DNA of 64,000 bases, from assembly GCA_025594325.1 (NCBI GenBank), contig JANHCV010000008.1, forward strand, positions 1,364,001 through 1,428,000. Direction: 5' to 3'. The stretch is from Blastocladiella emersonii ATCC 22665. Its lineage: Eukaryota; Fungi; Blastocladiomycota. A program made the translations under genes and the position numbers. Below the pieces are notes generated by a model. That model had not been told where the DNA came from, searched no databases, and saw only the letters and a list, made by a program, of their open reading frames with translations. This document shows, in pieces, positions 1,039-56,000 of the stretch (positions are counted from its first letter, which is position 1; each line of letters opens with the position of its first letter).

Positions 1039-1059
1039 CACATGATTGTTTGACGCGTC
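1039..1059 (-). promoter_or_regulatory. Composite MCB-N7-E-box element upstream of family A copy 1
   Basis: CACATG-attgttt-GACGCGTC, 104 bp from the ATG at 935. Confidence 0.7.
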
Positions 1060-1198
1060 TCACACGAGCAGTTCATCAATGCGGTCTGCCCTTTGCTATT
1101 CTCGCTCACTGTCTTCGCTTGCCTTCTACCCAACTGCTTCGCAACGTCGCGTCCGCACCCTGATGCCGCACCTCGGACGAAAACGCTCGCTGAACCGA

Positions 1199-1366
1199 TC
1201 AACGACAAGGCTGCCATATAAGAAGCGCGAGGAGTTCTGTCTCACAGTCTGGCCGCTTTCGTGAGACAGCGAATAGGCTGAGAGCTGGCGCCAGACCGTC
1301 TCCGTTGAACATGAGAAGTGTAAATAGCTCCATGGGTCTGTTGAATGGAGTGCAGGGCGATTTCAT
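1199..1366 (-). pseudogene. Degenerate 5' remnant of family A
   Basis: MKSPCTPFNRPMELFTLL...LAPALSLF matches the family N-terminus then decays; own degenerate element at 1437-1457 (CACATG-attcctc-GGCGCGTC). Confidence 0.65.
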
Positions 1367-1534
1367 AGCGACAGGATTGGCCTCACACCACCAAAAAGAG
1401 TCGAGAGTCCCCGAGCTCGGGTCGCTCATAGTTTGTCACATGATTCCTCGGCGCGTCAGCTCCGTTCGGCTGACCCCATCGAACGTGGCACTTCTCGCAG
1501 GCGTGATACTGCGATGAAGTCTATTTCAGCCCGC

Positions 1535-2995
1535 CTACACATCGAACAGCAGACCGCGCTTGGTCAGTACCGCCCTTGCCTCGTGCCAGACATCCAGCAC
1601 TGACTTGAGCGCCCACGCCTCTTCCTCCTTCAGCACGACAAGCAACGCGCCAAGTATTTCGGTGCACTGCTCGACCTTGAGCCTGTCGTTATTCGTCGAC
1701 AGACGGCGCCAGCACGCGCCGACGTTGTCGCGCAAGCGATTGATACTGTGAATCAGCTCCTTGGCCGTGCAATTGGCCGGCAACACGGTACACGCGCTCT
1801 CGGCACGCGCAACTTGGATCCCCTCGGCAAGCATCTTACCATAATTTTGGACGCGCTGATGCAGCTTTTTGCACTCGTGGGATGTGTGCGTCGCGGCCCC
1901 GTGCGCGTCGTGCTTGATGGATCGGCAGAAGGAACACCGATCCTTGCCACTGACGTTCTTGTGCAGGGCGCGCGATGTGTCTGCGGTCGGAAGTGGCGCC
2001 CGCGCGGGTGCGGCATCAGGTATGCGCAGCGAGGCAAAATGCGCAGCCAGTTCCGCAAGTGTCAGGTACTGCTCGCCGAGCATCTCGTTCACCGGGTCGG
2101 ACAGGCCGCCCATCACCTCGTAGAGCTTGTTCGAGAAGACGTGTTTGATATTCCGCTCGGAAGCAATGTTGCGGTTGTCGATATCGATCACCTCGGCAAG
2201 CAACGCGCGATATTCAAGGTGAAAGTCACCCACGGTACTGCCCGGCCGCGGCAAGAGCGCGAGAAATCGCTGGACCCAGTCACGGTTCCAGTTCGGATCC
2301 GCCGCGTCCAGGAACACGCGGCGCGCTTCCGCATCGGTCGCGTTCTCGCGCAAGAAGATCGCGAAGACGTGATACAGGGGTTTGGGCACGTTGAACCGCG
2401 CGAGATAGAGCGCTTGGGCGAGCGGAATCTCATAAGCAACAGCGCGCAACGAATCGAGAAAGTCATTTGGGTCCCGAGCGACCCGCATGCGCGCGGGCCC
2501 ACGGATCCCGAAGAGCGGTGCATCCTTGCGGATAGCCTGAAAAAAGGCCGTATTGTACGAGCGGCGGAACCCTTTCCGGTTGACGAGCGGGGCTGGCAGC
2601 TGGTGGGCCGTCGACGCACTAGAAGGGCCGTGTCCTGGCTTGGCAGAGCGGGAATCGGGTCCTTGTTGTCGTACACGTGCGCGATGCTCCTCGATGGCGG
2701 AGCTCAAGAGCTCGAGCTCCCGAACCATGGCGGCCAGTTCAGTTTCAGCCGAGGGCTCCAACATGGGCGCTAGCTGTTGCAGGCACCGCGAAAGAGACAA
2801 CCGAATGATTTGGATCCGCAAGTCCATGGTTTGGCGAGTGACGTCTCCCAATAGGTTTGAGAGCTCCTCGTCGCCGGTCGGGAACTCGTTTGAGCGGACG
2901 AAGCGAGCAAGTGCTGGCGGCAAGTTGCCGCACTCGTGCGCAAGGAAAGAAAATAGCTTTTCGGGTCCGTTGCATGGAGTGCATGAGGCTAACAT
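1535..2995 (-). CDS. Gag-like orphan family A, copy 2 (intact, ~486 aa)
   Basis: Open ORF; ATG at 2995 aligns with paralogue starts (MLASCTPCNGPEKLFSFL); capsid-like PRPGSTVGDFHLEYRAL and CSFC-x12-H-x4-C. Confidence 0.85.
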   Translation of the reverse strand: MLASCTPCNGPEKLFSFLAHECGNLPPALARFVRSNEFPTGDEELSNLLGDVTRQTMDLRIQIIRLSLSRCLQQLAPMLEPSAETELAAMVRELELLSSAIEEHRARVRQQGPDSRSAKPGHGPSSASTAHQLPAPLVNRKGFRRSYNTAFFQAIRKDAPLFGIRGPARMRVARDPNDFLDSLRAVAYEIPLAQALYLARFNVPKPLYHVFAIFLRENATDAEARRVFLDAADPNWNRDWVQRFLALLPRPGSTVGDFHLEYRALLAEVIDIDNRNIASERNIKHVFSNKLYEVMGGLSDPVNEMLGEQYLTLAELAAHFASLRIPDAAPARAPLPTADTSRALHKNVSGKDRCSFCRSIKHDAHGAATHTSHECKKLHQRVQNYGKMLAEGIQVARAESACTVLPANCTAKELIHSINRLRDNVGACWRRLSTNNDRLKVEQCTEILGALLVVLKEEEAWALKSVLDVWHEARAVLTKRGLLFDV

Positions 2996-3091
2996 GGTGT
3001 TGGGAGGGAGTATACGGTGGTTGCAAGGAGGCGCGGTGGTTTGAACGCGCTGCTGCGATCTGAAACGCAGGTTCGACCTGCGGCGGGACAT

Positions 3092-3112
3092 CACATGATA
3101 TCTCGACGCGTC
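3092..3112 (-). promoter_or_regulatory. Composite element upstream of family A copy 2
   Basis: CACATG-atatctc-GACGCGTC, 97 bp from ATG. Confidence 0.7.
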
Positions 3113-3555: not shown

Positions 3556-4959
3556 CTACTCGGCCCGATGCCAGCCGCGTTGTTTCCCCTCCGTTCGGGT
3601 TGCTCGCCACATCTCCTGGACAGACCGGAGAGCCCAGCCTTCCCGCTGAACTGGAAGCGCGAGAAGCGCTGCGAGGAGGTCCACGCAATCGCCAAGCTTG
3701 TACTTGTGCGACCTTGTCGGTAGAAAGCCAGAATAGCCACCAATGTACGTGCGCAGCTCTTGCATAGTGCGAATGAACTCGTCCGCCCCGCAGTCTCCCT
3801 GCCAAACTTGACGAGGGACCCGCGCTCGCGTCACGTAGATTCCCTCGGCGAGCATCGCGCCGTAGTGACTCGTGCGCTTTAACCTGCAGCACTCCTCGGT
3901 GGTATGCGATCCAGCGGCGTCTCGCTCACGCGGCAACGCGCGGCAGAAATGACACGACATATCACGTTTGACACTCCCGCGGCCCGGCGTTGGCCTCTCG
4001 ACTACCGTTGACGAAGTCGAGTGGCGGACTATTTTGAGCGAGGAAAGTTGACTTGCCATTTCGGCGAGAGAAACGGTTTCGAGGCCAACCAATTTGTTGA
4101 TGGCCATCGTCGCTGCGCCCAGGACCCGGTGCAGCTTGATTGAGAATATGTGCTTGATCTGCCGCTCGCTGCCAATAACCGGATCGTCAACATCGATGAC
4201 CTCGGCAAGCATCGCTCGGTACTCGACGTAAAATTCGCCCAAAGTGCTACCCGGTCGCGGCTCGAGTCTGCAAAACCGCTTGAACCACTCGCGGTTCCAG
4301 TTCGGGTCGGCTGCGTTCAGGAACACGCGACGCGCTTTGGAATCTGACGCGGTCTCGCGCAAGAAGATGCAGTAGACAGTGTAAACCATTTTGGGCACGT
4401 TATGCCGGGCGAGGTAGAGTGCTTGCGCGAGCGGGATACTTGGTACGAGCTTCCAGAGGTGGCCAACAAACTCGATTGCGTCTCGTGCGACCCGCGAGCT
4501 CGGCCCGTCGATGCCGAGGAGTAGCGCGGATTCTCGGATGACTCGGAAGCAAGCTGTATCATACGATACGCGAGGCTTGCCCGGCGTGTGCCACAGCGCG
4601 CTGACGGGCGACTGTGGTCGGGACGAGCGCTCGTTTCCAAGAGCACGGCGTTGCTCGATCGTGGGAGTCAACTCGTTGAGCTCATCAAGAAGCGCGACGA
4701 GCTCAGCCATCTCGGGGGCCGCCTGCTCGGGTAGACGGTGGTCAAGGCCGCAAGTGAGGGACACGCGAATCGACTGAATGCGCAAGTCCAGTTTCAACAG
4801 AATCACCGCTTTTAACAGCTGTAGCAGCTCAGAGTCGGCCGGGGGAAACTCGTTGGAGCGTGCGAAGCTGACAAGAATCGGCGGTAAACTGTCGCGCCGC
4901 CGCAAAATGAACGAAAACAGCTTTTCAGGTTCGTTGCATAGAGTGTCTGGTGTTTTCAT
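3556..4959 (-). CDS. Gag-like orphan family A, copy 3 (intact, ~467 aa)
   Basis: Open ORF, start MKTPDTLCNEPEKLFSF; same motifs; CHFC-x12-H-x4-C. Confidence 0.85.
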   Translation of the reverse strand: MKTPDTLCNEPEKLFSFILRRRDSLPPILVSFARSNEFPPADSELLQLLKAVILLKLDLRIQSIRVSLTCGLDHRLPEQAAPEMAELVALLDELNELTPTIEQRRALGNERSSRPQSPVSALWHTPGKPRVSYDTACFRVIRESALLLGIDGPSSRVARDAIEFVGHLWKLVPSIPLAQALYLARHNVPKMVYTVYCIFLRETASDSKARRVFLNAADPNWNREWFKRFCRLEPRPGSTLGEFYVEYRAMLAEVIDVDDPVIGSERQIKHIFSIKLHRVLGAATMAINKLVGLETVSLAEMASQLSSLKIVRHSTSSTVVERPTPGRGSVKRDMSCHFCRALPRERDAAGSHTTEECCRLKRTSHYGAMLAEGIYVTRARVPRQVWQGDCGADEFIRTMQELRTYIGGYSGFLPTRSHKYKLGDCVDLLAALLALPVQREGWALRSVQEMWRATRTEGKQRGWHRAE

Positions 4960-5042
4960 GGCATTGGAAGTGCTGTACGTGTCGCCGATCAGAGAGGAGA
5001 CGGTCCGCAAGCAAACAGCCTGGGTCGCCCAACTTGAAACGT

Positions 5043-5063
5043 CATGTGATAACTCGACGCGTC
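5043..5063 (-). promoter_or_regulatory. Composite element upstream of family A copy 3
   Basis: CATGTG-ataactc-GACGCGTC, 84 bp from ATG. Confidence 0.7.
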
Positions 5064-5296
5064 GCCTCCGCGTCGCTCTCGCAAAGCCCGTCACGATCAT
5101 GTCGTGCATGCTTGCCGACCGCTTCCGCCTCAACTCGAATGGAAGCGGCGACAATCATACACGCGCTCCCCGTCAAACTTTCGCTCAGGCTCACATGAGG
5201 TGTACATCGCCTGGTTGCTCACGTTTTGAACACCAGAGAGGGCATCAGCTGCAACACAACAAGTCAAAATATAGTTAAACACGCAGCGACTCACAC

Positions 5297-6766
5297 TCAT
5301 GCACCATTGAACCATCCCTTCTTCCTGCCAACAACGAGCGTCTCGCGCAACACATCACGGACCGCCTTTAGTGTCCGTTCCGACTGATCGATTGGGAGGG
5401 CAAGAAACGCTACAACGAGCTCGACGCTGTCCTGGACATTGATTTCGTTGTCGCCTCCAGATCCAGGCACCTGTGCTTGTGCCTTTCTTAGTGCCCGCCG
5501 CAGGTCCTGCAGATCCTGGACCAAGGCACGAATTGAGCCGTGTTCGCGCCAGAGGTCGCGCGGAGCGCTCACCTGCGCGATGAAGATTCCCCTGGCAAGA
5601 ACAACATCGTAAAACCGCGCGCGCAGCAGTTTGTGACACTCTTCAAGTGTATGTGTTGCTGCGCCGTGGCTCTCGCGTGTCAAGGTCCGGCAGAACAGGC
5701 AACGGTCATTGCCTGAGAGCTTCGCCTGGCTGGTGGCCAGTTCCGAGTCAACGGGGTGTCGCGACAGAGGCATTTTCGCTGAATCGGGAATCTTGATGGA
5801 AGCAAATTGGCGCGCCATGTCTGCGACGGTCTAGTTAGGATAATTGACCATTGAGTGGATCGCATCAGATGATTCGACAAACGCCTCGTGCAGCTTGTTG
5901 GAAAACACGTTCTTGACTTGGCGCTCGCTCCCGATCATTGGGTCGTCGATATTGATTACCTCGGCGAGAAGGGCACGAAACTCGAGATAGAAATTGCCCA
6001 CGGTGCTCCCTGACCGGGGCTGCAGCGCATGAAACCGGGCGACCCACTCGTGGTTCCAGTCGGGATTGGCTGCATTGAGAAAGACCTGCCGCGCCTCCGC
6101 ATCGGTCACGTCCTCGCGCAAGAAGATCGATACAAGATGGTACAGCGGCTTCGAAACGTTGAATCGCGAGAGATAGAGAGCTTGCGCAAGTGGGATGGTA
6201 GGCACAAGCTCCTGCAGCAGACTGAGATACTCGGCGGCGTCGCGCGCAACCCGCATCCGCTTCGGGCCGCGGACTCCAAGCAGCGGCGCTGACCTGCGAA
6301 TAGTCTGGAATTGATCCGACTCGTATGAGAGGCGGAAACCGCGAAAGACGCTGGCTGGTTTGCGCGGCGCGGACAGGTCATTCGATCGCGTGCGATTTTG
6401 GGTTGCAGGAAAACACTGAGCCCGAACATCCTGGGGAGTTTCGAGGCGTCGCTCGATCGCGGAGCTAAGCGTCTCGAGCTCACGAAGAACTTCCGCGAGC
6501 TCGGCCGCTTGCACGCGGTCCAGCTCGGACGACTTGTGCGACTGATGACGTGAGGCCTGGTCAAGAGACAGGTGGATGACGCGTATGCGCAGTTCCATGG
6601 ACTTGCGAGTCACAGCATCAAGCAGCTGGATGAGATCCGCGTCGCCAATCGGAAACGTATTCGATGCGACGAATTGAGCAAGTGCTGGCGGTAAGCTGTC
6701 GCGGTCTCTCAAAAGGAAGGAAAATAGCTTTTCTGGTCCGTTGCATGGAGTGCATGGTAGTAACAT
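5297..6766 (-). pseudogene. Family A copy 4 with a single in-frame TAG
   Basis: ORFs 5831..6766 and 5297..5818 share one frame; TAG at 5833-5831 where paralogues have K/R. Confidence 0.8.
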
Positions 6767-6869
6767 GGTGGCGTAGGTTTCATACGTATGCGTTGGAGAG
6801 CGGAAGCGCCGATCGAGGCGGCGATCGTCTCGCGGGCGCCTCGAGACACCTCACGTGCACTTGAAACAT

Positions 6870-6890
6870 CATGTGATAGCTCGACGCGTC
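6870..6890 (-). promoter_or_regulatory. Composite element upstream of family A copy 4
   Basis: CATGTG-atagctc-GACGCGTC, 104 bp from ATG. Confidence 0.7.
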
Positions 6891-7111
6891 GCCTCCCCGT
6901 CGCTCTCGTAGGCCCGTCGCGATCCTGTCACGCATGCTTGACGACCCTTCTCGCCTGAATTCTAATAGGAGCAGCCACGCTTACACACGCGCTCTCTGGA
7001 AAAGTGTTGCTTGGCCATTATGAAATGGGCGGCGTCGCCCTCCTCCTCCCGTTCCTAACACCGGAGAGGGCATCAGCTGCAACAAAACAAGTCAAAAAGA
7101 GCGGACCCCGC

Positions 7112-8580
7112 TCACGCATCATGGAACCACCCCTTCTTCCTGCCAAACGCGAGTGTCTCGCGTAACATTTCGCGGACCGCCTTGAGTGCCCACTCCTCCC
7201 GCTCAATTGGCAAAGCAAGAAACGCGGTGACGCGCTCGACGCTGTCCTCACCATTGACCTCGTCTTGGCCACCAGACTTTTGGACTTGTCCGTTCCGCAG
7301 TCCCCGCCGCAGGTCGTGCAAGTCGCGGATCAAGGTACGAGGTGGTCCGTGCTCGCGCTGAAGCTCGCGCGGAACACACGTACTTGTAATACGGATCCCC
7401 TTGGCAAGAATTGCGCTGTAGAACCGCGCGCGCAGCAGCTTATGGCATCCTTCAGCTGTACGAGTCCCTGCACCATGATCCTCGCGCGTCATGTCGTGCA
7501 GAACACGCAACGGTCCTTGACCAAGAGCTTGCCTTGGTTTCGGACCAAGTCGATGTCAAGGATGGGTCGCGACACGGATGCGTGCGGTGAGTCGGGAATT
7601 TCAACGGAGGCATGCTGGCGCGCCATCACGTCGGAGACCGTCCTGCCCGCGTAATTGACCACCTCGTGGAGCGCATCGGATGTGTCACCGAGCGCGTCGA
7701 GCAACCTGTTGGAAAATACGTGTTTGACTTGCCGCTCGCTGTCAATCATTGGGTCGTCGATGTTCATGACCTCCGCTAGCAGCGCGCAAAACTCGAGGTA
7801 AAAGTCTCCAACGGTGCTGCCCGGTCGCGGCTTGAGCGCCGAGAAGCGCTGGACCCAGCCACGGTTCCAGTTTGGATCGGCTGCATTGAGAAACACCTGG
7901 CGCGCCTCCGCATCGGTGGCTCTCTCGCGCAAGAAGATCGAGAGAACATGGTACAGCGGTCTCGACACGTTGAATCGTGAGAGATAGAGAGCTTGCGCGA
8001 GCGGGATAATGGGGACGAGCTCCTGCAGCGCTTTGATATAATCGGCTGCATCGCGCGCGACCTGCTTTCGTTTCGGACCGCGGATCCTAAGCAGCGGCGC
8101 TGATCTGCGAATGGTCTGGAATTGATCGAGCTCGTATGAGAGGCGGAAACAGCGAAAGCCGCGGACTGGTTTGCGCGGCGCGGGTGCGATAGTTGATTGC
8201 TTGTGGTTTGGAGCGCCAGGCGTCGACTGACGAGCTCGAAAGTCATGGGGAGCTTCGAGGCGTCGCTTGATCACGGAGCTGAGCGTCTAGAGCTCGCCGA
8301 GAATGGCCGCGAGCTCGGCCTCTCGCGCGCGCTCCAGCTCAGTCACATCGAGCGACTGCTTACGCGCGGCCTGGCCAAGAGTCAAGTGAATGGCGCGTAT
8401 GCGCAGGTCCATGGACTGGCGGATCACGGCATCAAGCAGCTGGATGAGATCCGCGTCGCCGATCGGAAACGCGTTTGATGCGACGAATTGAGCAAGTGCC
8501 GGCGGCAAACTGACGCGGTCTCTTACAAGGAAAGAAAAGAGCCTTTCTGGTCCGTTGCATAGAGTGCATGATGGTGGCAT
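7112..8580 (-). pseudogene. Family A copy 5 (nonsense + frameshift)
   Basis: TAG at 8289-8287 replacing E; frameshift inside the zinc finger near 7495; finger His replaced by Arg. Confidence 0.8.
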
Positions 8581-8663: not shown

Positions 8664-8684
8664 CATGTGATCGCTCGACGCGTC
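8664..8684 (-). promoter_or_regulatory. Composite element upstream of family A copy 5
   Basis: CATGTG-atcgctc-GACGCGTC, 84 bp from ATG. Confidence 0.7.
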
Positions 8685-8787: not shown

Positions 8788-9830
8788 TCACAACGACCGT
8801 TCGGCGTGATACCACCCGCGTTTCTGGGCTTCCGTGCGAGCTTTCCGCCACATCTCCAGCACGAATTGAAAGGCCCACTCTTCTTGTTCGATTGGGAGCA
8901 CAAGGAACGCTCTGAGAAGCTCCACGCAATCCTCGATACTGCGTGCAATTGACGGCTTTGACAGTGAGCCGCGGTAATCCTTGATGCTCGCGCGCAGCTC
9001 CTGCATCGTCCGAACCAGGTCTTTTGCTGAACACTCGGCATGCCGCATTTGGCGCGGAACGTGTGACCGCGGAGCGTGGATCCCCTCGGCCAGCTTCACG
9101 CTGTAGTACGTCGTGCGGCGCAGTTTGTGGCACTCCTCAGTCGTATGTGATCCGGCGCCGTGGTTCTCGCGCGCCATAGCGCGGCACAAGGCGCATCGGG
9201 AATTTCCCTTAACTCTGCCGGCGGGACGCAGCGGTCGCGCCGGTTGAGGCGGTGGCGACGTCGAGCGATCGGGGAAAGTCACAGAAGCAGCTTGAGCTGC
9301 CATTTCCGCGACAGAAACGGTTGAGAGACCGACCAAGTCGTTTAGGGACCCCATGGCAGTCCCGAGGGCCTCGTGCAGCTTGTTTGAGAAGACGTGCTTG
9401 ATCTGCCGCTCGGAGGAGACCATGGGGTCGTTGATTGGAATCACCTCGGCGAGCAGCGCGCGGAACTCGGCAGAGAAATCGGCCACGGTACTGCCTGGGC
9501 GTGGCGTGAGAGCGTGGAGCCGCGCGATCCACTCGCGATTCCAGTTCGGGTCAGCGGCGTCCAAGAATACGCGGCGTGCCTCGGAACCTGAGACCGTCTC
9601 GCGCAGAAAGATGGCATACACGCTGTACAGCGGCTTGGACACGTTGTACCGTGCGAGGTAGAGTGTCCGCACGAGCGGGATACTGGGTACAAGATTGCGG
9701 AGGAGCTCGAGAAATTCGACCGCGTCGCGCGCGACTCGCATGCGTTTTGGTCCCTTGATTCCAAGCAACGGGGCGTTTTCGCGGATAACTTTACCCCCCA
9801 GACCCTCTCTGCGTGGCACGTAAACACGCA
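8788..9830 (-). pseudogene. Family A copy 6, 5'-truncated
   Basis: Homology starts at IRENAPLLGIKGPK; N-terminal helical domain and promoter missing, replaced by the 3' end of the RanBD sequence. Confidence 0.75.
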
Positions 9831-9881
9831 CCACGTGTCTATTGAACATTCGGGCTGAACGAGCAAATAGAGCCTATTGCA

Positions 9882-10484
9882 TTATTTAATCAGAGAATGG
9901 CCAAGGCGTGAAGTAAAAGCGGGGGGATGGCAGAACAGGTGATCGGCGTCGGGGGCGGGGACGCTGGGCCCGTTCGGGGAGGCGGCGCCGGCGTTGAGGT
10001 CGTTGTTCCACTTCTGGGCCTCCTCGAACTTGGCCTTGAAGCGCTGGGCAATGTCCGAGTTGGCGAAGCGCACGGCGAGCATCTCAGGCTTGACCTCGTC
10101 CTCGGAGAAGTCGGCGAGGGCGGTCCAGACCCACGAGCGGTCCGAGCCGACGTTGGGGTTGAGCTTCATCTCGGGGGCAATGACGTGGTTGGCGCAGAGC
10201 TTGAGCGTCTTGTCGCGGCGCATCAGCACGCGCACCTTGCCCGACTGCTTGTGCATCATGAGGCGCATCTCGCCCGTGCCGCGCTCCTTCCACTCGGTCG
10301 TGGCCTTCTCGAACCGGAACAGCTTGGCGCGCCTGTATCATTACGAGTGGATTGTGAGTGGAGGTGGTCGCGGCGGTGAGACGCGTCGCTCACGCCGGCC
10401 GTGGGATACGCGTGAAAAGAAACGAACGCACATCCTGAACAGGGGCGTCTCGTCGTCCTCGGCCGTCTTCACCTCTACCTTCTC
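9882..10484 (-). CDS. Ran-binding domain (RanBP1/Yrb1-like) exons without their own start
   Basis: [18 protein letters not shown] / [24 protein letters not shown]...KLCANH...SDRSWVW...[22 protein letters not shown]; intron 10431-10333 (GTGCGT...TACAG). Confidence 0.85.
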
Positions 10485-12328: not shown

Positions 12329-12430
12329 CAATAAAGCCGCCCATCTTTTAACTGTGATCCGTCCATGTCGGAGCCTCCCGACAGAAGCTGGCCGTCAAGG
12401 AGCAGCTGCGAGACATTGAGCGCGAGACAT

Positions 12431-12451
12431 CACGTGATTGTTTGACGCGTC
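12431..12451 (-). promoter_or_regulatory. Composite element upstream of the kinase
   Basis: CACGTG-attgttt-GACGCGTC, 103 bp from the ATG at 12328. Confidence 0.75.
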
Positions 12452-14792: not shown

Positions 14793-14813
14793 GACGCGTC
14801 GCAAAAACACGTG
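14793..14813 (+). promoter_or_regulatory. Composite element upstream of a putative spliced transcript
   Basis: GACGCGTC-gcaaaaa-CACGTG with a further CACGTG immediately downstream. Confidence 0.6.
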
Positions 14814-16066
14814 TCGGTCACGCGCACGTGACACAGGTTGGCGTGGACGTGAGCGCGAGCGCGCGTCGGCCGAGCGAGTGACTCTTCGCCACGCCGCGCG
14901 CGGTCCCCGCTCCCTCACTCATCACCACTCGCTGCAATGTATCACCCATCCGACAACGAAGCACACTGCGACCTCGACGCACGGCATTCATGCGGCCACC
15001 GTCAAAAGGTACGCGTCATTCCGCTCCGCCGCGGCCGCCGCCGCGCGCTTGGCTCCCATCGCGCCGACCGTCGTGTTGCGGTTTCGGAGCGGTGTGCCCG
15101 GCGTGGTGCGCGTCATCCACTGCTCGCTCCACGGTCGACGCACCGTGAGACCAGCGGCGTCGTCGCCGCTACGCGTGCGCGCCGTCGTGCGCGCGCTCCC
15201 CCGCGCTCATGCTTCGGGTGCGGCACGGCGCAGCGCAGGTGGACCCCACCGGGCTACCAGCCGCGTGCGCGCTCATCAAAGGTGCTGACACCTGTGCGGT
15301 GCCCATGTAGCCGCCGGCGCGCGTCCGCCACCAGGGACTCAACATTTGGCGACTCATGGACCTGAGACCATCGAGCCAGCATCGCGCGCGACGGTACGCC
15401 GTCAACACCACACCACTTGCGCCTGCTGTATGTGCTCACGCCACGCGCTCGCGCCAGTAGCGCCGACGGGCTCGCTCAAGCGGTTCGGCCGCGCCCACCG
15501 CGTGCGTCAAGTCCCAGTCGCAGGTACGCTCGACACTTTTCGTCGCTGCGCAAGAGTTGGCGCGCGACTGACATGCTCGCTCACATTGCTCCTCGTAGCC
15601 CCTCGTGATCCACTGGTCTCTCGCTGCACCATCAACCCGCCACCTCTCGATGGCCCATCTGACGAGCAAGATCCGCAAGCTGTAGGGTGCCGATTCCTAA
15701 GACGACTTGGTACGCCCTCGTCACACGCCGCTCGAGGCGCAGCGCGACTCACATGAGCTCTTGGACCTTTCTTGCTTGTAGCAGCGATCTCTGACCACCA
15801 TCTCGCCCAGCCGGTTTCTGTACTCGGGGTCGCGGCGCGACCTGACCGCGGATCGCAGCAAGTGCGACGCGCACGCGGTTCGGGTCACGGGCGGCGGCTC
15901 CGAGTGCGGAGGCCTGGTGCTGGCGACGGCGTCTGCGGTCCGCTCGGGTACCTGCTTGTCGTGCATCGTCGTCGCGCACGGGCCGGGATTCCGACTCGCA
16001 TGCCGCGCGACCCGCGGCGGTGGCGACCTGACCTGTATCTGAGATCTCCCTGTACGCAATACACTC

Positions 16067-19567: not shown

Positions 19568-19862
19568 AGTGTTTCACATAAAAATACATGATAGATTTCG
19601 CGTGCTCATGATCCCGTCTTCCGTTCACGACTGCAAGGAAGCATCGCTCGGCGCCGACTCGCGCACCAACGCCTACAGCCGGCCGTCAGCTGCCGCTCAC
19701 ATGCATGAGACCGCATTGCATCGGGTACTCTGGCCGACCACCTCGAGCAGCGACCGCCGAGGACGTGAAGATGTGCGCGCGTGTGGCGCGACGCGTCAAG
19801 GGGCGAGCGGGTGTCATCAGCTGACGCGCTTTCACCGCTTCTCCCGCAAGCCCCACCCCATC

Positions 19863-22485: not shown

Positions 22486-22506
22486 GACGCGACGAACCAC
22501 CACGCG
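22486..22506 (+). promoter_or_regulatory. Degenerate composite element upstream of family B copy 2
   Basis: GACGCGAC-gaaccac-CACGCG, 87 bp before the ATG at 22593. Confidence 0.55.
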
Positions 22507-30230: not shown

Positions 30231-30251
30231 GACGCGACGCGATATCACGCC
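30231..30251 (+). promoter_or_regulatory. Degenerate composite element upstream of the distant family-B gene
   Basis: GACGCGAC-gcgatat-CACGCC, 157 bp before the ATG at 30408. Confidence 0.45.
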
Positions 30252-33548: not shown

Positions 33549-33569
33549 GACGCGTCGATCAATCACGTG
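33549..33569 (+). promoter_or_regulatory. Composite element upstream of chitin synthase-like paralogue 2
   Basis: GACGCGTC-gatcaat-CACGTG, ~850 bp before the ATG at 34420. Confidence 0.6.
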
Positions 33570-36836: not shown

Positions 36837-36857
36837 GACGCGCCGCGAAATCACGTT
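36837..36857 (+). promoter_or_regulatory. Degenerate composite element upstream of LRR family copy 1
   Basis: GACGCGCC-gcgaaat-CACGTT, 100 bp before ATG. Confidence 0.55.
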
Positions 36858-38779: not shown

Positions 38780-38800
38780 GACGCGTCGCGAAATCACGCC
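38780..38800 (+). promoter_or_regulatory. Composite element upstream of LRR family copy 2
   Basis: GACGCGTC-gcgaaat-CACGCC, 158 bp before ATG. Confidence 0.55.
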
Positions 38801-38957
38801 GTTATCACGCGATCGTTCAGCTGTGGCGTCGCTGGTCGCCGAGTCAGGGGGGCCCCTGGCCGAGTTCGCCTCGCCGCTCGAACGCCACCGCAAGGGCGAC
38901 GCTGTCGATTCCAGCGCACGCTCTCCCTGGCCTTAACGGATTACATGCACCAACACC

Positions 38958-46430: not shown

Positions 46431-46529
46431 AAGTAGTTTGATTTGAAGAGTACCGTACAAATAATAGATCTCAATTTTTCTAACCCGACCGTGAAGGCTG
46501 CTAACATCTCTTGAATTGAGGCACGCATT

Positions 46530-47985
46530 CTACTCGCCGCGCGCCCATCCGAAGTTCACCGAGGCCCGAAACCCCTCGCGCCACACGTCTCGGACCGCCT
46601 CGAGCGCCCAGTCCGCTCGACCGAGCGGCAACGCGATAAGCGCGGCGAGTAGCTCGACACACTCCTCGGCCTGGTCCCGGTCCGTGGCGCGGTGCAGCCA
46701 GCGTGCTCGCTCGTCCAGCCTGCACCGCAAGCGCTGCATAGAGTAGATCAGGTCGTTCGGGGAACACTGCGCGCGCCAGACGTCGCGCGGGACGGAAATT
46801 GATCCGACGTGAAGCCCAGCGGCAAAGATGGTCCCGTGGGACCGAGCGCGGCGCAGCTTGCGGCAATCTTCGGCCGCGTGCGAGACGGATCCCGGTCGCT
46901 CGCGCACGATCGACGCGCAGAACGCGCACGGGACTCCAGTTGCGGCACTGCCACTGCGACGCGGGATCGCGGCAACGTTCGCCGTTGGTCGGGTTTGGGT
47001 TTAGTTCAAGGCAGTGGGGGAAGCCAGACAGGCGGCAACGTCCGCAAACTTCTTGGACGGCTCGGAGATGAGAGTGAGGACCGAGTCGGGCGTCCTGCCG
47101 CCAAACGCCTCGTGGACCTTGTTTGAGAGCACCTGCTTGACCTGGCGCTCGCTCGTGATCACGGGGTTCTCGATACCGATCGCCTCGAAGAGAACTGCGC
47201 GGAAATCTGCAATGAACTCGGTCACGGTGCCGCCGGGTCTCGCGCGCAGCCCTTTGGAACGCTGGACCCGGTCGAGGTTTCAGTTTGGGTCCGCCGCGTT
47301 CAAAAACACTTGCCGCGCCTGGGCATCGGACGCCGTCTCGCGCTCAGGAACAAGGCGTACAGGTTGAACATGGGTTTCGGGCCAGGTACACGGCTTGGGT
47401 CAGGGGGATGGAGCGTGCGACTCGGCGCAGCTGCTCGAGAAAGTCGGTGGCGCTTTTCGCGACCCGCATGCGCGTCGGTCCGGTAATCCCGAGCAGGGGT
47501 GCCTGCTCGCGAATCTCGTGGAAGAAGGCCGACGCGTACGAAATCCGGTTTCTGACAGAGGGCAGCTTGAAGTCTCGCCGCGGAGCGTGCATGAGGACGT
47601 ACGGGGAAATCTTTTCGGGGTGTACAAGCTGACAGAGCGGCATTGAGCGCACAAGTGTGAGGCGCTGCTGGATTACCAACGACAAGGCCTCAAGCTCGTG
47701 GAGGAGTGAGGTAAGCTCTGCTACCCGCCGCCGCACCAACTTGGCGGTCTGGTCGGGCGAGCCTTGCGTCACGCAAGGTTCGAGCGTCAAGCGAATCAAG
47801 TAAACCCGGGTATTCATAAGCTGAAGCGTGACGGCTTCCAACAGCTGCGACAGGTCCGTTTCGCTGGTCGGAAGCTCGCCAAGCTTTGCGAATCTGGCGA
47901 GCGCAGGCGTCAGCCCACCTCCCACGCGGGACAGGAGAGTAAATAGCTTTGCAGGTTCGTTGCATGGAGTGTATATAGATTTCAT
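46530..47985 (-). pseudogene. Family A copy 7 (frameshifted)
   Basis: MKSIYTPCNEPAKLF start; small deletions/frameshifts near 47370 and 47280; CAFC-x12-H-x4-C retained. Confidence 0.78.
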
Positions 47986-48074: not shown

Positions 48075-48095
48075 CACATGATATTGAAACGCGTC
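48075..48095 (-). promoter_or_regulatory. Composite element upstream of family A copy 7
   Basis: CACATG-atattga-AACGCGTC, 90 bp from ATG. Confidence 0.6.
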
Positions 48096-48335: not shown

Positions 48336-48356
48336 GACGCGTCGAAATATCACGTC
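48336..48356 (+). promoter_or_regulatory. Composite element upstream of LRR family copy 3
   Basis: GACGCGTC-gaaatat-CACGTC, 106 bp before ATG. Confidence 0.65.
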
Positions 48357-48461
48357 TTGATCACGCGACCGCATTTTGGGGCGGACCACCTGTGATGACG
48401 CGGGCGGCGCCCGAACGCCTTCGCTCCTCCTTCGCAACACCGAACCATATGCAACGACACC

Positions 48462-50149
48462 ATGAAACTTGATGCAACGCTCGTGCTCGAGGACATGCTC
48501 GTCCGCGCAGTCCGGCTACACGACGCGGCCGACCGCGACGGGCTGGCGCAATACGCTCGGGTCCTTCCCCGCTGCCACGCCCCTCGCGTGTATCCCGCTA
48601 TCGTTGATCATGTTCTTGATAAGATTCCAATGGTGGAAGCCGCTGCGAGAGGCCACATCTTTGCTCTCAACATGTGGCTTTCCAGCGGCCGGCCGCTCCC
48701 CGATCACAGTGACTTGCTGCATTTCGCCAGTTTTGCGAAGCGCATTGATGTGATTGACTGGTGGGGCAGCTTGGGCCTACCTTTAAGCAATCTCGGCTGG
48801 GGCGAGCACGAACAGTTGCTTCATGTTCTCTTGGACGCGAACCCGCCTTGGCTGGCTCAGGTCCAGCGCAACCAAAACTCTGTACTTTGTGCTAAAATTG
48901 TCGTGTTCTGCATCCGCTCAGCTGTTAGCCGGTCTAGGACGACGCGAAGCTTACTCTTGGCGATCTCTATGCGAGACACTTGAGCGAGAAAGTTGCCTCG
49001 GGTGCTCTCACGCACTTGGTCATTTCTGCTGTTCGCTTTACGGACTTCTCAGCCAGTATCTTGGCCAATGCACTCGCCAGTCCAGCTCAGCGAGTCGAGA
49101 CAATCGAAATTAACGGGTCGTGTCTCTCGTTCTCACACCTCGCGAAGATTCTCTCGCCGAGCACGGCGAGGATGGTCAAGCTCGAATCCAACTACTTTAC
49201 GGACGAGAGTGCTTGTGATACCGACAACCCGCGTCGATGGCTGCCAGAGACCGTAGGGGAGCTCCTCTTTGAGTGCGGCGTCACCGAATCGTGGTTTTTA
49301 CCATCCGCGCTCCTCTTTCGCAACATGCCGTCTTCGCTCCGCAAGCTCACCTTGTCGAAATTGCAAGGCGAATTCGATGAGTTTACTCACATGGCAGACG
49401 GACTGCCCCGTGGACTGACCTCCTTCAAGTTGGCCGATACTTGCATTTATTACGATGACTGCACCTTGCTCATGTCGTCCCTACCATCCACGATCCAGGA
49501 GCTCACAGTCAAGCTGCCCGAACCGAATGAGGATTCCATGTCCGCCATCGTCAAAAGTCTTCCGCAAACGCTCCTCAAACTGGACTTGGGTAGCCCACTT
49601 GGCAGCGAAGGCGCCCGCATTCTCGCCACTCGCATGCCACCAGGTTTGGCGCACCTACGCCTGTCACAGTGCGAGCTCGTTGGGGATGAACTATGCGAGC
49701 TCATGAGCAATCTGCCGTCGACGCTGGAGACACTTGCGCTGTACGACGACTTTGAGCTGAGCGACGGATGCGTTGCGGCGCTCGCGCGGAACTGGTCGCC
49801 GTCGCTACTCCAGCTTGATTTATCTTTTGCCACCATGAGCCGTTCGGGCGTCCTACAGCTTGGCGCACGGGTTTCATCGACTCAGCTAAGAGAGCTGCGG
49901 CTCGACGGCATCGCTGCGATTGATACAGACACTGCGCTTACGATCCTCGACCGGCTGCCCAGCTCGCTCACGTTACTAGGTTTGAGCCACCAGCGACTCG
50001 ATGACGCGTTCTTGCGGGGTTTCGGCGAGCGGGTTGCTGCGGGGCGCCGCTTTCCCGCGATCCTCGCGTGCAGCAACGCATTCTCACGACTGGCCATTGA
50101 AGGGCACCGGGCCGTGATTTGGCCGAACGGAAGCTTGATGGTTGAATAA
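48462..50149 (+). CDS. Ankyrin-like + RNI-type LRR family C, copy 3 (apparently intact, ~536 aa)
   Basis: One phase-0 intron (donor 48861 or 48882, acceptor 48937) joins ORFs 48462 and 48980; about 9 LPxxLxxLxL repeats. Confidence 0.78.
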
Positions 50150-50559: not shown

Positions 50560-52035
50560 CTACTCGTCGCGCACCCATCCGCGCCTCACCGCGACCCGGA
50601 ACGCCTCAAGCCACACGTCGCGCACGACCTCGAGCGCCCAATCCGAACGATGGAGTGGCAATGCGATAAGCGCGGCCAGTAGCTCCGCGCACTGCTCGGC
50701 CTGGTCCCGGTCCATATCGCGACGCAGCCAGCGCGCCTGGTCGTCCACCTTGCGGCGCAAACGCTGCATGGCGCGGATCAGGTCGTTCGAAGCACATTGC
50801 GCGCGCCAGACGTCGGGCGGAACGGAAATGGATGCGACGTGAAGCCCAGCAGCAAGGATGCTCCCATACGACCGGGCGCGACGAAGTTTGCGGCACTCCT
50901 CGGCTGTGTGAGAGGCGGCGTTCCACCGTTCGCAATCCAGCGACGCGCAAAACTCGCAGCGGCCACCTGCGCTGGTCCGACTACGACGCGACGCACGGGC
51001 ATCGTTTCGCGACGGCGGGAGTTGAGGGCGGTCGGACACTGTGAATGACGCAAGGCACGCGGCCATGTCCGCGACCGTCTTGGACGGGTCGGCGATGAGA
51101 TCCAGAATCGAGCTGGAAGCCACGTCGCCAAACGACTCGTAGATTCGGTTAGAGAATACCTGCTTCACTTGGCGCTCGCTGCCAATCTTGGGGTCCTCGA
51201 CATCAATCACTTCGGCGACCAGGGCACGGAAGTCGGCAATGAACTCGGTCACGGTGCCGCTGGGCCTCCCGCGCAACCCGTGAAACCGCTGGACCCAGTC
51301 GCGGTTCCAGTCCGGGTTCGCAGCGTTCAGGAACACGCGCCGTGCTTCCGCATCGGACGCCGTCTCGCGCAGGAGGAGCGCGTACACGTTGTACAATGGC
51401 TTTGTGAGATTGTACCGCGACAAGTACAGTGCTTGGGCCAGCGGAATGGAGCGCGCGAGGTCTTGCAAGGCGTGAAGAAACTCGGTTGCGCTGTGAGCAA
51501 CGTGCATGTGCTTTGGGCCGCGGATCCCAAGCAGTGGCGCCTGCTCGCGGATCAGCTGGAAGCAGGTCGTAGCATACGAGCTACGCGAGTGGTGGGGATG
51601 CGGACCAAGGGGCATGCGCGGCGGTGCAGGTGCATGAGCCTGTTTGAGAGCGGTTTTTGGCGGTCGAACGGGTTCGCAGGACTTGAGTGAGCGCGCTTGC
51701 GCGCGACGCTGCTCGATCTCACGATTCAACGTCTCTAACTCGTCGATGGCGGTCGCGAGCTCGGCTGAAAGCGACACTGGCACTCGCTGCGGCTGGGCGA
51801 ATGTGGGCGCGTGCGTGACGCAACGTTCAAGCGACAAGTGGATCAAGCGGAGCCGGAGGTCCATGAGCTGATAAGTGACGGCTTCCAGTAGCCGCGAGAG
51901 CTCTGATTTGCTGGTTGGCAGCTTGGCTGAGGACATAAAGCGAGCGAGCGCCGGCGGGACTTTCTCGCCTTGCTCGCGTCCCAGGAAAGAAAATAGCTTT
52001 GGAAATCCGTTGCCTGAAGTCTGTGAAGCTTTCAT
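50560..52035 (-). CDS. Gag-like orphan family A, copy 8 (intact, ~491 aa)
   Basis: Open ORF with all family motifs; CEFC-x12-H-x4-C. Confidence 0.85.
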   Translation of the reverse strand: MKASQTSGNGFPKLFSFLGREQGEKVPPALARFMSSAKLPTSKSELSRLLEAVTYQLMDLRLRLIHLSLERCVTHAPTFAQPQRVPVSLSAELATAIDELETLNREIEQRRAQARSLKSCEPVRPPKTALKQAHAPAPPRMPLGPHPHHSRSSYATTCFQLIREQAPLLGIRGPKHMHVAHSATEFLHALQDLARSIPLAQALYLSRYNLTKPLYNVYALLLRETASDAEARRVFLNAANPDWNRDWVQRFHGLRGRPSGTVTEFIADFRALVAEVIDVEDPKIGSERQVKQVFSNRIYESFGDVASSSILDLIADPSKTVADMAACLASFTVSDRPQLPPSRNDARASRRSRTSAGGRCEFCASLDCERWNAASHTAEECRKLRRARSYGSILAAGLHVASISVPPDVWRAQCASNDLIRAMQRLRRKVDDQARWLRRDMDRDQAEQCAELLAALIALPLHRSDWALEVVRDVWLEAFRVAVRRGWVRDE

Positions 52036-52295
52036 CACTGCGTCGATGGTAGAACATGCGTCGGAAGAGAGGCGAAGCGGTCAGTCGTTGACGAGGATGG
52101 GCGACCAGCAGCGCCACACTTGCGCCACACATCACATCCCGGAACGGAGCGCGTCGTTCATCGACCGTAGCGGGGCTCCATCGCGCACAAAGCACCTGAT
52201 TAAAACGCGCATCGCACAGGAGTCAGTGGTGTCAAGTTCCGGCGGGGTCGACCTTAGTTTGAAGCCGAGCGGGAGGTGAGGCAAGCGTAAAGCTA

Positions 52296-52747: not shown

Positions 52748-53212
52748 ATGGAACCCTCGTCGCTGAATCGCCCGTCTGCTCGCCCCCGAAACCTTCAGGC
52801 TGTGCTCCCCGGCCTATATAAACGCCGTTTTCCTTCGTGGGGCAGCTCGACCACCACCGGCGAGTACTCGCACCTCAAGCAGGACGGCAAGGAGTCTGGT
52901 GACGTGGAAGGTGTCGATGGTCAAGACGACGCGGCCCCCGCCAGCAAGCGCAGCCGCACTTCGGACAGCAGCTCGCGTCGCCTCTCGGACTCGGAATTCC
53001 TCATGGGCATCAAGGAGGTGTTCCAGAACGTCTCGACCGCCGACTCCAAGCCCGTTCTGACCGCCGCACTTGAATGGGTCCAGGACGCGTACAATGACAA
53101 TGAAGAGTACCAGATCGACGTCGCCACCCGCCTGACCGAGGATCAAGCGCTTCGCGCCATGGCCGTGTCCGGACCGAAGCGCAAGCGCGTCCTCGAGTTT
53201 TTCATTCAGTAG
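52748..53212 (+). pseudogene. Remnant C-terminus of the Harbinger accessory ORF
   Basis: Convergent to the transposase inside the TIRs; no Myb/SANT domain visible. Confidence 0.45.
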
Positions 53213-53379
53213 CTCTCTCGCACATGTCCCCCTCCCTCGCGTTGCTTCCTGGCCTTGTTCTCGCCCATTTGTGTCCAATACATCTGGCTTTGTGTCCATC
53301 GTATCTTCAATCGTTACCCTTCGCTCAAAAATGACGCGACTCGTTGAGAAACGCGTGGTTCTCGAAGTGTCTCACACGT

Positions 53380-53400
53380 CACGTGATTGATCGACGCGTC
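53380..53400 (-). promoter_or_regulatory. Composite element carried inside the Harbinger
   Basis: CACGTG-attgatc-GACGCGTC; flanked by extra ACGCGT sites (~53351, ~53427). Confidence 0.55.
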
Positions 53401-53524
53401 TCCACCGATGCGTTCTGACCTCAGCGACGCGTCAAATCATCTGGAATCGCTTATCTAACGTTATAGTACTTGACAAATCAGTATATTACAGCATGCATGC
53501 GGGTACAACAATTATTTCGCGCCT

Positions 53525-54842
53525 TCAAAGACGGGTCCCACGAGCGGCCATGACGCGCCTGTACTCGGTCCAAAGAACATTTGCGATGCGGTTCCGAAGC
53601 GAGATACCGCGCTGACGAGCTCCGTCCAGGGAGGCCTCGAGGACAGCGGCCTCGTCGTCCTCCTCGTTCTCGTCGTTCAGGGGCTCGCGCCCACGCACTG
53701 GCGCCTCACGCGCCGCGTCCCGCGCGCGCCGGAGCTCCGTCTCGGCGTCGCGAAAGAAGGTGTCGCCGCCTTGGTTCCACTTGTTGATCATGTTGTGCAG
53801 CGTGCAGAGCGCGTACACAAGCTTGACTTGAGTCTTGATTGGGTAGGCCGCGCCAATCGAGAGGACGCGGAACCGCTTCTTGAGCACGCCAAAGATATGC
53901 TCAATGGAGTTGCGGAGCGACGCGTGACGCAGATTGAAAAGCTCTTCGCGGTTCTTAACTCTACCTACGTTGGTGAAGCAGATGAGATGGCGCCAACGTG
54001 ATGGTCATGGCAGTGAGAACGTACCCATCCTTGCCGCGGGCAAACTCGCGAAGATGATAGCGGGTACCGCTGAAGGGCACGATGATGGACGTGCGGTTTG
54101 CGTAGCCGCCGTCGGCGAGGTAGAAGCGGCCGGCGGGGATCTTGAACCCACGGGCGAAGGCGTCCGAGAGCACGCGCGAGTCATGCGCCTTGCCCTCCCA
54201 CCCTGCGAGAACGTAGGTGAAGTTCAAGTCAAAGTCGCAGGCAGCGAGGACATTTGAGGATATGGTCCCCTTGCGGTTTCGGAACGAGTCGTGAAGCTTA
54301 GTGGGCACAACAAACGGGATGTGCGTTCCGTCAAGCGCGCCGACCGCGTTCTGGAACGGAGCGTATTTCGGGTCGTGGGCGATGCGCTCATGCACGGGCG
54401 TAGAGTCGGACGGCTGGACAATGAACTCGGGCATCAGGCGGTACAGAGCGTCGAGCACTTGCTTCAGAACCCTGGACGCGGTCTCGCCAGAGATTTGGAA
54501 CCGCTCCCTGAGGTTGCGGTTGGTGCTGCCCTCGCCGGCCATGACAAGAAAAACCATGAAGCGCGCCTCGACGGACAGCTCGCGGCCGTCGGCGAGAAGG
54601 CCACGGTCGCGGAACAGGCGGCAGATGGCCTTGAAGGTCTCGCGGGGCATACGGGCGATTTCCGAAAAACGCGTTTCGCTGTTGCACGTCAGCAGCTCTT
54701 GAACCCACGACTCGCCGGAAAGCGTGGACGTGCGGATAGGCTCCCACGAGCGGCGCTCGTTGCGAGCAGCGAGACGTCGCAGGAGAGCGAGGGCGGCTGT
54801 GAGCATTAGGCCGCGCAGCTTGCGGTTGTATCCCTTGCCCAT
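53525..54842 (-). CDS. Harbinger/PIF DDE transposase (~417 aa, one intron)
   Basis: GALDGTHIP, YVLAGWEGKAHDSRV, YLADGGY, ELFNLRHASLRNSIEHIFGVLKKRF; intron 54024-53961 restores the frame. Confidence 0.9.
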
Positions 54843-55229
54843 GTTGTTTGAGGGCTCGAGAACACGATGCGTGAGGTTAGGTGTTGATTCGTTGCAATAA
54901 GTGCGGCTGCAAAGAGGTGGGAAAGATTTTATTGCGGGGGGGCGTTCATCCAGCGGGGCGTTTGGTTCGCACGGCCGCTGAGATGAACGGGGGTGAGGTG
55001 AAACGTGGCAACTTTTTCAGCTGATCCACCTGATCTGAACCAAACGGGCCCTAAGGTAGGTAGTACTAGCTGGGCGCCCTCCTCGAACTCACGTTCAGCG
55101 CACACGTCGCTCAGCGCACACGTCGCTCAGCGCAAATGTCGCGCAGCGCCTTATTCCCGGGCCGTTCAATCTGACTCTCGCAGGGTTCAAGACTTGCTAG
55201 CGACGCGGACACCTTACACAAGATCGCCA

Positions 55230-55830
55230 CCGCTCCCGCGTTTCCTATCGCGTTTCCCGCAAGCGCGAGGTGCTCGAGCTTCGAAAGGATCTGTGCTGCG
55301 AGTGCTCGAGCGCCCGCGTCGTCGAGCCGACATCCCGCGAAGTTGAGGCGAGCATGACCGCGCGGCAGAAGATTTCGGTTCCTGCGTCGCCGATCGGGTA
55401 GCCGCCGAGCGTGAGGTCCACGAGCACACCGCCAAAATAGCCGGTGAGCTTGGCGGTGCCCAGTTTCACAATCCGTTTGCTATGTAGGTACAGCTCAGCG
55501 AAGCCGGGCGGTATGTCCTCGCCAAACGCGGCCGCGACCATCTCACCGAGCGCGTTGTGCGACAGGTCGAGCACGGCCACCGACGGCGGCAGCTGGTTAG
55601 CGACAAACTTCGCCAGTGCCCGCTTCTTCAGGCGCGTTGCTCGAGACGTGCAGCTGCGTCAGAGACTCTGTCAGCGAGCCGGCGAGGACGAGCAGGCCGG
55701 TGTCCGAGATCCGGTTGATGCTGAGGTCGAGTTACGCGTACAAGGCCGGTATGCGTGGTGCGAGGAGGCACATGACAGTGTTGGTGATGCGGTAGCCGGC
55801 GAGCAGGAGCGCAGTCGTGCCCAGGGCGGG
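55230..55830 (-). pseudogene. Degraded RNI-type LRR gene
   Basis: NQLPPSVAVLDLSHNALGE...VDLTLGGYPIGDAGTEIFC; stops and frameshifts upstream. Confidence 0.65.
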
Positions 55831-55979
55831 CTATTTGGCGACGGCCGCGTCGCTGACATTGTTGCGCAGCTAGCGATCGGAGTACCTTGCACGAATTCAA
55901 AACATCTAGGCTTGTCGCTTGCCTTTATTGAGCAATAGAGCAGGACAGAGCATGCCTCTGGCGAGGGAGCGGCCCGAAA

Positions 55980-56000
55980 GACGCGTCGATCAAACACGCG
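55980..56000 (+). promoter_or_regulatory. Composite element upstream of family B copy 3
   Basis: GACGCGTC-gatcaaa-CACGCG, 82 bp before the ATG at 56082. Confidence 0.6.

Follow-up and report, generated by a model that had tools for sequence, protein, structure and literature searches.

A fixed-spacing MCB-like and E-box composite element as a candidate promoter module of lineage-specific gene families in Blastocladiella emersonii

The MluI cell-cycle box (MCB; ACGCGT) is bound in fungi by MBF (Mbp1-Swi6) of the APSES/KilA-N family, and the SBF/MBF family joined the ancestral E2F network in an early-diverging fungal lineage. Class-B E-boxes with a flanking T are represented by the yeast centromere DNA element I (CDEI)/Cbf1 site, RTCACRTG, and by the MITF/TFE M-box, TCATGTGA. 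Cbf1-Met4-Met28 sites, Pho4-Pho2 and Sox-Oct elements are fixed-spacing composites read by cooperating factors, and two half-sites at one preferred spacing and orientation are the usual signature of cooperative or complex binding. Regulon-wide upstream motifs are also known from giant viruses, as with the mimivirus early promoter AAAATTGA, and mimps are transposon remnants with terminal inverted repeats. To our knowledge, promoter architecture has hardly been characterised in Blastocladiomycota, which include Blastocladiella emersonii, a species under development as a model for zoospore biology and optogenetics. Here we describe a composite element of B. emersonii ATCC 22665 in which an MCB-like box and an E-box are held 7 bp apart. 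The window that was analysed is a stretch of 64,000 nucleotides (positions 1,364,001 to 1,428,000) of the 1.80-Mb contig JANHCV010000008.1 in assembly GCA_025594325.1, with a GC content of ~0.61 and a CpG observed/expected ratio of 1.27, i.e., without CpG depletion. The element occurs at 17 window sites and, judging from sequence, probably serves a lineage-specific regulon as a cis-regulatory module of the proximal promoter.

The consensus of the 17 window sites is ~25 bp long and reads GA-GACGCGTC-GA-NNW-AT-CAYRTG-AT. Exact GACGCGTC-N7-CACGTG is present four times in the window (12431, 14793, 33549 and 53380) compared to 0.01 expected by chance; six further sites differ from it by one mismatch, six by two, and one (30231, which reads GACGCGAC...CACGCC and was picked up by the weight matrix only) by three. 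When up to two mismatches are allowed, the window contains 19 matches against 2.07 expected, a number that was reached in 0 of 100 shuffles. A weight matrix built from the 17 sites and run over the window gives bimodal scores, with the 17 sites at 25–38, just two further positions at 10–15 and a maximum of 20 in simulated sequence, so the 17-site list is complete for the window. Spacing is similarly restricted: a scan of spacers from 0 to 40 bp with at most one mismatch per half yields 17 pairs at 7 bp and 0–6 at each other distance. Spacer sequence is also constrained, with G at position 9 in 14 of the 17 sites, A or C at position 10, A at position 14 in all of them and T at position 15 in 14. 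The 25-bp fixed-spacing motif is real.

Both halves of the composite resemble known kinds of site and also differ from them. The distal half has the ACGCGT core of the MCB, extended to the palindrome GACGCGTC; GACGCG is present at all 17 sites and the complete GACGCGTC at 12. The other half is a 10-bp palindrome, ATCAYRTGAT, which like CDEI and M-box sites takes CACGTG, CACATG or CATGTG and keeps the flanking T/A. Its class-B E-box core CAYRTG is found at 11 of the 17 sites with the flanking AT...A(T) kept, and is degenerate (e.g., CACGCG, CACGCC) at the other six. A degenerate first E-box is followed 5–11 bp later by a second copy, ATCAYGYGA (36861–36869, 38804–38812, 48360–48368 and 30256–30263). 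The sequence ATCAYRTGA occurs at 11 places in the window (1.2 expected), 10 of them inside or beside a composite; the window E-box half is therefore almost exclusively a part of the composite, which distinguishes it from CDEI and M-box sites. GACGCGTC occurs 20 times (4.9 expected), with 12 copies within composites and eight outside, two of which adjoin a composite (30284 and 53426) and about six of which are solitary, which is roughly the chance level. In contrast to the MCB, the box is locked to an E-box at 7 bp in fixed orientation. Because the halves hardly occur outside the composite beyond chance, the element behaves as a single unit rather than as a chance pairing of two motifs. A subclass, GACGCGT[TC]-N2-GATAT-CATGTGAG, is seen at 48075, where the spacer reads CAATAT, and at six positions when other genome loci (designated L with a number) are included with it: 48075, L001:19842, L009:20449 and L027:4270, 9149 and 18299. 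Such a subclass suggests that the element exists in two or more lineages or affinity classes.

All 17 sites have the same polarity: an open reading frame (ORF) starts past the E-box half in each case and past the MCB half in none. The likely start ATG lies 70–157 bp from the motif end at all 17 sites, and 80–106 bp from it at 12. An ORF of >=100 aa with its ATG 70–130 bp past the E-box half is found at 11 of the 17 sites, compared to 0 of 17 past the MCB half and 14% at random positions (P ~2.5e-6). Between motif and ATG are a CT-rich tract and a CACCATG start context, features common in B. emersonii genes with and without the motif. ATG depletion gives no signal of a transcription start site (TSS) in the motif-to-start intervals, which contain 17 ATGs against ~19 expected by our own base-composition estimate. 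Much of an earlier reading of this DNA from its letters (hereafter the original prediction) is borne out by these measurements: all 17 sites that it listed are present at their coordinates, the MCB half is distal and the E-box half proximal, and the distance of 82–106 bp to the ATG that it gave for most cases agrees with the 80–106 bp measured here. It also stated that the spacer is always 7 bp long and varies in sequence. The 7-bp rule stands in the window, where the expected spike appears; the spacer is not free, given the constrained positions, and other spacings occur elsewhere in the genome.

The genes downstream of the sites fall into several groups. Compared by tblastx, the 2.5-kb stretches that follow the 17 sites place seven sites in family A, three in family B and two in family C and leave five singletons (12431, 14793, 30231, 33549 and 53380). 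Since many sites are paralogous, the window holds about eight independent groups and not 17, and the motif thus heads at least eight window groups without tblastx coding similarity, with more in the other loci. Paralogy allows promoters to be compared within families, and the composite is the sole conserved upstream island in them. When eight diverged family A promoters are aligned, 19 columns are invariant; 14 of these fall inside the motif, and the other five are isolated singles, some of them at the start codon. Mean pairwise identity in family A is 0.74 in the 25 motif columns compared to 0.42–0.44 in the 60 bp on each side; the corresponding values are 0.79 versus 0.44 and 0.51 in family B, and 0.64 versus 0.40 and 0.42 in family C. 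Drift of the flanks around a retained motif, together with the backup of degenerate E-boxes by second copies, indicates purifying selection on the blocks.

A second conserved block, the start module ATGAAACTYSATGCAAC, lies 103–125 bp past the composite at most sites in the window and in the other loci. In most cases it forms the latter of two tandem ATGMAAC units ~10 bp apart, ATGAAACT[CT][CG]ATGCAA(C), a two-unit pattern found eight times in the window against 0.8 expected. For the heptamer ATGCAAC, 13 of 17 window copies lie 86–167 bp after a composite on the same strand. Read in frame, the start module gives M-K-L-[H/D]-A-T, and its frame differs by family: in family A it is out of frame owing to extra bases between the units, and in family C the long ORF starts at the second ATG. 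Such use of different frames points to conservation at the nucleotide level, or else to a relic of a shared 5' cassette. Identical 16-mers of the start module also precede ORFs without a recognisable composite. Because the start module is shared, the 5' ends of the families cannot be regarded as fully independent. The claim that the composite is shared by unrelated families holds in one respect, as tblastx detects no coding similarity between groups, and is limited in another, as families A, B, C and others have ATGAAACTYSATGCAAC in common.

Little of the downstream gene content is familiar. Family A proteins are 44–55% identical to the longest copy, have no Pfam match and reach a best E value of 0.16 in a profile search of PDB sequences. 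An AlphaFold model of family A has a mean pLDDT (predicted local distance difference test score) of 64, with an all-helical core at ~80, and a Foldseek search of that model against PDB and viral structures returns nothing at E <=0.001, with template modelling scores (TM-scores) <=0.16. A profile search of 1.84 billion proteins finds 16 family A relatives, all from B. emersonii; 15 are on JANHCV010000008.1 (H9P43_006651 to 006885) and one weak match is on a 5.14-Mb contig. None of the window copies of family A is in the GenBank annotation, an exact-protein look-up of one ORF was empty, and protein searches found no transcript-derived proteins of families A and C. Family B has weak ankyrin and leucine-rich repeat (LRR) matches. 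Family C has two members, 42% identical, with no Pfam match and no homologue. A perfect 82-bp direct repeat lies in a family C gene region (56417–56498 and 56597–56678). The TKL kinase ORF 10475–12328 (-) matches H9P43_006899 of B. emersonii ATCC 22665 at 100% identity, and locus L002 around this kinase overlaps the window in reverse (window coordinate = 22158 minus L002 coordinate), which puts the window at ~1.363–1.427 Mb of the contig. Repeated GGACA(C)AAAT words occur downstream of the motif at 12431 and 53380 (12300–12345 and 53260–53300, both on the minus strand), and also upstream of kinase paralogues, ~190–210 bp before the ATG in L003 and L007 and ~220 bp before it in L008. No cell-cycle, replication or DNA-synthesis domain was recognised in the downstream genes (orphan families, ankyrin/LRR proteins and possibly the TKL kinase), in which respect the composite departs from the MCB.

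Several labels of the original prediction are not supported by this comparison. 'Gag-like' for family A has no Pfam, PDB-sequence or fold support, the sole exception being a C-x2-C...H-x4-C knuckle that the family carries, and 'Ulp1-like' for family C finds neither a Pfam match nor a homologue. The kinase, which had been listed among the close targets, has its annotated ATG at 12157, 273 bp after the 12431 motif, and its own TATAAA; its two closest paralogues are without the motif, and a third has only a degenerate MCB half ~340 bp upstream. The suggestion that the element acts as a core promoter is doubtful. Of 24 annotated genes in the B. emersonii loci that were sampled, only two carry the motif within 400 bp upstream (22 are without it), and the CT-rich tract and CACCATG, which are general, lie between motif and ATG. 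The motif hence behaves as a regulon-specific upstream element rather than as a general core-promoter element.

Distribution beyond the window was sampled in seven further B. emersonii loci (176 kb), which were reached through paralogues of the kinase and annotated relatives of family A. Strong copies are present at L001:9284(-), L003:4391(+), L007:900(+) and 18184(+), L009:20449(-), and L026:3049(-) and 5032(-), and weaker copies of the subclass at L001:19842 and L027:4270, 9149 and 18299. The L009:20449 copy precedes an independently annotated gene of 427 aa by 178 bp and has the orientation of that gene. The spacing check proposed with the original prediction was run on these loci as well as on the window, where it peaks at 7 bp: ACGCGT-N8-CAYRTG, which is equivalent to the 7-bp spacing, occurs six times in the 109 kb of the first five loci and any other spacing <=3 times. 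Sampled density is 28 sites in 151 kb on JANHCV010000008.1 (window, L001, L007, L026 and L027) compared to two in 67 kb on two other contigs, with biased sampling; the way in which the loci were obtained confounds this contig difference. Around kinase homologues, 60 kb from Blastocladiella britannica (two loci) and Allomyces macrogynus (one locus) contain no motif copy. An exact motif scan of IMG/VR viral contigs gave no match, and one of metagenomes gave 16 single matches, about the chance number by our own estimate, none with a second copy.

These observations can be assembled into a promoter model. The two palindromic halves are the MCB-like GACGCGTC and ATCAYRTGAT, a class-B E-box that resembles CDEI or the M-box, with their centres a fixed 14 bp apart. 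A pair of cooperating dimeric DNA-binding proteins, or else a single complex, would read them together as one oriented unit. Such a module would sit ~60–90 bp upstream of a probable TSS, whose location is itself predicted, and would be followed by the CT-rich tract, the CACCATG context and the start module ATGAAACTYSATGCAAC. Its presumed role is common regulation, either activating or repressing, of fast-evolving species-specific families that are concentrated on JANHCV010000008.1 and are mostly absent from public annotation. We infer protein binding and transcriptional control from the palindromic halves, preferred spacing, asymmetric flanks, fixed orientation and distance, conservation amid drifted flanks, and second E-box copies, which together favour a promoter module read by cooperating factors or one complex. 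APSES/MBF and basic helix-loop-helix (bHLH) proteins are candidate binders by resemblance of the sites, and resemblance is not membership. SBF/MBF-family proteins have been reported in early-diverging fungi (PMC4862756).

Some observations weigh against the promoter-module model. Spacing is less strict outside the window, where other loci contain variants equivalent to a 6-bp spacer and to two further spacings: L003:2510–2570 has neighbouring variants with a 6-bp spacer and with ACGCGT-N10-CACGTG, and the latter also occurs upstream of two paralogous LRR genes at L008:14756 and 16870 (-). The sample of other loci is small and was partly chosen through family A. Two family A copies in the window (8788–9849 and 50560–52038) have no motif, and the association with the kinase is weak. 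Most downstream ORFs are unannotated and several are truncated or broken (1437, 8664 and 19790); given the broken copies, part of the motif-bearing gene set may be decaying. Finally, the start module that families A, B, C and D share could stem in part from a single 5' cassette that spread, instead of from independent recruitment.

The last point leads to an explanation by descent, in which an ancestral motif, ~100 bp and ATGAAACTYSATGCAAC were copied with genes and recombined onto other bodies, so that an inherited 5' cassette without present function persists through shared ancestry and not through selection. Such a history fits the occurrence of both start module and motif in several families, in different frames, the restriction of family A to one species and almost entirely to one contig, and the broken state of several gene copies. 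It fits poorly with eight family A paralogues (proteins 44–55% identical) in which flanks have drifted to near-random identity (0.42–0.44) around a motif at 0.74 with 14 invariant columns, or with degenerate first E-boxes that are backed by a second copy, and we consider it unlikely. It is less probable still that the composite is a transposon terminus, target site or recombination signal of a Harbinger, Helitron or other element. No similarity extends into or out of the motif between non-paralogous copies, and the PIF1, LTR-element and transposase genes have no upstream motif, even though transposons abound here (a Harbinger DDE transposase, a PIF1 helicase and a long terminal repeat (LTR) element). 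The sites 53380(-) and 55980(+) do form an inverted pair around the Harbinger transposase, which is what such a signal would predict; however, each faces its own outward gene, every site, this pair included, has an ORF start past its E-box half at the usual distance, and any two divergent copies of one consensus resemble an inverted pair. In a self-BLAST of the window no motif-bearing repeat links different families, and self-BLAST and promoter alignments show no flank shared between families; a longer dispersed repeat or transposon end, the alternative against which the original prediction asked to be checked, is thus rejected.

The motif could instead be a chromatin or silencing landmark that recruits a repressor or boundary factor and keeps selfish-looking families silent. 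Most motif-bearing ORFs are absent from public annotation and protein searches found no transcript-derived copies of families A or C, as silence would predict, but gaps in annotation can also stem from repeat masking, and strict orientation and ATG distance suit a promoter-proximal element. This idea departs from the promoter-module model only in the sign of regulation, and we think it improbable. Two other identities were rejected. An RNA element finds no support, as the window has no Rfam family and no tRNA and the 8-bp palindromes are too short for hairpins. An integrated giant virus is likewise rejected because ~40 scanned ORFs include no capsid, packaging ATPase, polymerase or similar domain; the absence of an IMG/VR motif match and of a viral structural match for the family A model also disfavours it.

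As a promoter module, the composite is comparable with several systems. It shares with Cbf1-Met4-Met28, Pho4-Pho2 and Sox-Oct sites the combination of two half-sites with one preferred spacing and orientation, which would imply cooperativity. Like the mimivirus promoter it is one short motif at a constrained distance before many unrelated genes, but viral hallmark genes are lacking among the ~40 ORFs that were scanned and the start-codon context is that of other B. emersonii genes. Promoter elements common to effector genes of accessory compartments have been described in Fusarium oxysporum (PMC5140021), and the likeness is that a short element marks unrelated, fast-evolving genes clustered in a repeat-rich compartment. 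Unlike a mimp, the B. emersonii composite has no transposon features. A literature search found no description of MCB-like and E-box pairing at 7 bp, nor of any B. emersonii promoter motif, and the composite is a new arrangement of known kinds of site. A more tentative proposal, which we regard as possible but doubtful, is a lineage-specific compartment, largely JANHCV010000008.1, whose orphan families use a private ~150-bp 5' cassette (composite plus ATGAAACTYSATGCAAC) grafted onto unrelated genes and read by a dedicated factor pair. Such a compartment would have its parallel in the effector compartments of fungi that are plant pathogens, although B. emersonii is a free-living, early-diverging species. 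A compact element with a testable spacing rule would give a direct handle for regulated expression constructs and would help to find transcription factors of an early-diverging fungus. It would also define an orphan-gene regulon largely missed by current annotation, and it flags dozens of unannotated ORFs that gene finders passed over.

Table 1. Composite sites, start-module copies and neighbouring features in the window and in other loci (L numbers).
Feature	Position	Strand	Score	Remarks
Composite	1039..1059	-	37.1	Heads family A gene 3-935; ATG 103 bp downstream; 311 aa
Composite, 2 mismatches	1437..1457	-	25.0	Heads truncated family A fragment; ATG 1366; ORF just 55 aa
Composite	3092..3112	-	33.1	Heads family A gene 1535-2995; ATG 96 bp downstream; 486 aa
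Composite	5043..5063	-	32.1	Heads family A gene 3556-4959; ATG 83 bp downstream; 467 aa
Composite	6870..6890	-	36.0	Heads family A gene 5831-6766; ATG 103 bp downstream; 311 aa
Composite	8664..8684	-	35.1	Heads broken family A copy (~7489-8580); first ORF 97 aa; tandem duplicate of 5032-6896 unit
Composite, exact	12431..12451	-	38.2	Upstream of TKL kinase H9P43_006899; link to kinase uncertain
Composite, exact	14793..14813	+	31.9	Heads unannotated ORF 14937-15365; MY... start like gene after L001:19842
Degenerate relative, MCB half only	19790..19797	+		100 bp before family C-type start (ATGCAAC at 19897)
Composite, E-box CACGCG	22486..22506	+	28.0	Heads family C gene; ATGs 22593 and 22627
Composite, 3 mismatches	30231..30251	+	29.6	Second CACGTGA 5 bp on; heads ORF 30408-31781
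Composite, exact	33549..33569	+	37.6	~1 kb before chitin-synthase-like paralogue; downstream gene assignment ambiguous
Composite	36837..36857	+	29.6	Second ATCATGTGA 11 bp downstream; heads family B (ankyrin + LRR) gene; ATG 36957
Composite	38780..38800	+	31.4	Second ATCACGCGA; heads family B gene; ATG 38958, 157 bp downstream
Composite, subclass GACGCGTT...CATGTGAG	48075..48095	-	25.4	Heads family A gene 46514-47985
Composite	48336..48356	+	33.5	Heads family B gene 48462-50149 (ankyrin, LRR matches); divergent from 48075 site
Composite, exact	53380..53400	-	37.6	Heads ORF 52814-53299; ATG 80 bp downstream; 161 aa
Composite	55980..56000	+	29.9	Heads family C gene; ATG 56082
Start module example ATGAAACTTGATGCAAC	48462..48478	+		ATGCAAC copy 48472
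ATGCAAC copies after composites	22617, 22627, 36944, 38968, 48449, 48472, 56106	+
ATGCAAC copies after composites	915, 2975, 4939, 6746, 8560, 47965	-
Start module, other loci	L001:19971; L007:13481, 16564; L027:2029, 9279; L009:1989(-); L003:16346
LTR retrotransposon, Ty3/chromovirus type	57826-63198			RT-RNase H, integrase and chromodomain matches; 217-bp LTRs 98% identical
PIF1-helicase, Helitron-like gene	26562-29976			PIF1-like genes also in L026, L027
Harbinger-type DDE_Tnp_4 transposase	53961-54842
Chitin-synthase-like paralogues (3)	17158-19567; ~34617-36591; L001:11157-17526			78-81% DNA identity

The surroundings of the sites include mobile elements and a small set of duplicated genes (Table 1). 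In the matrix scan no motif was found upstream of the LTR element, the PIF1 and Harbinger genes or the two chitin-synthase-like genes of the window. The chitin-synthase-like paralogues are each near family A genes, which suggests segmental duplication within the contig. The Ty3 element at 57826–63198 contains internal tandem duplications at 59451–59830 and 60831–61158.

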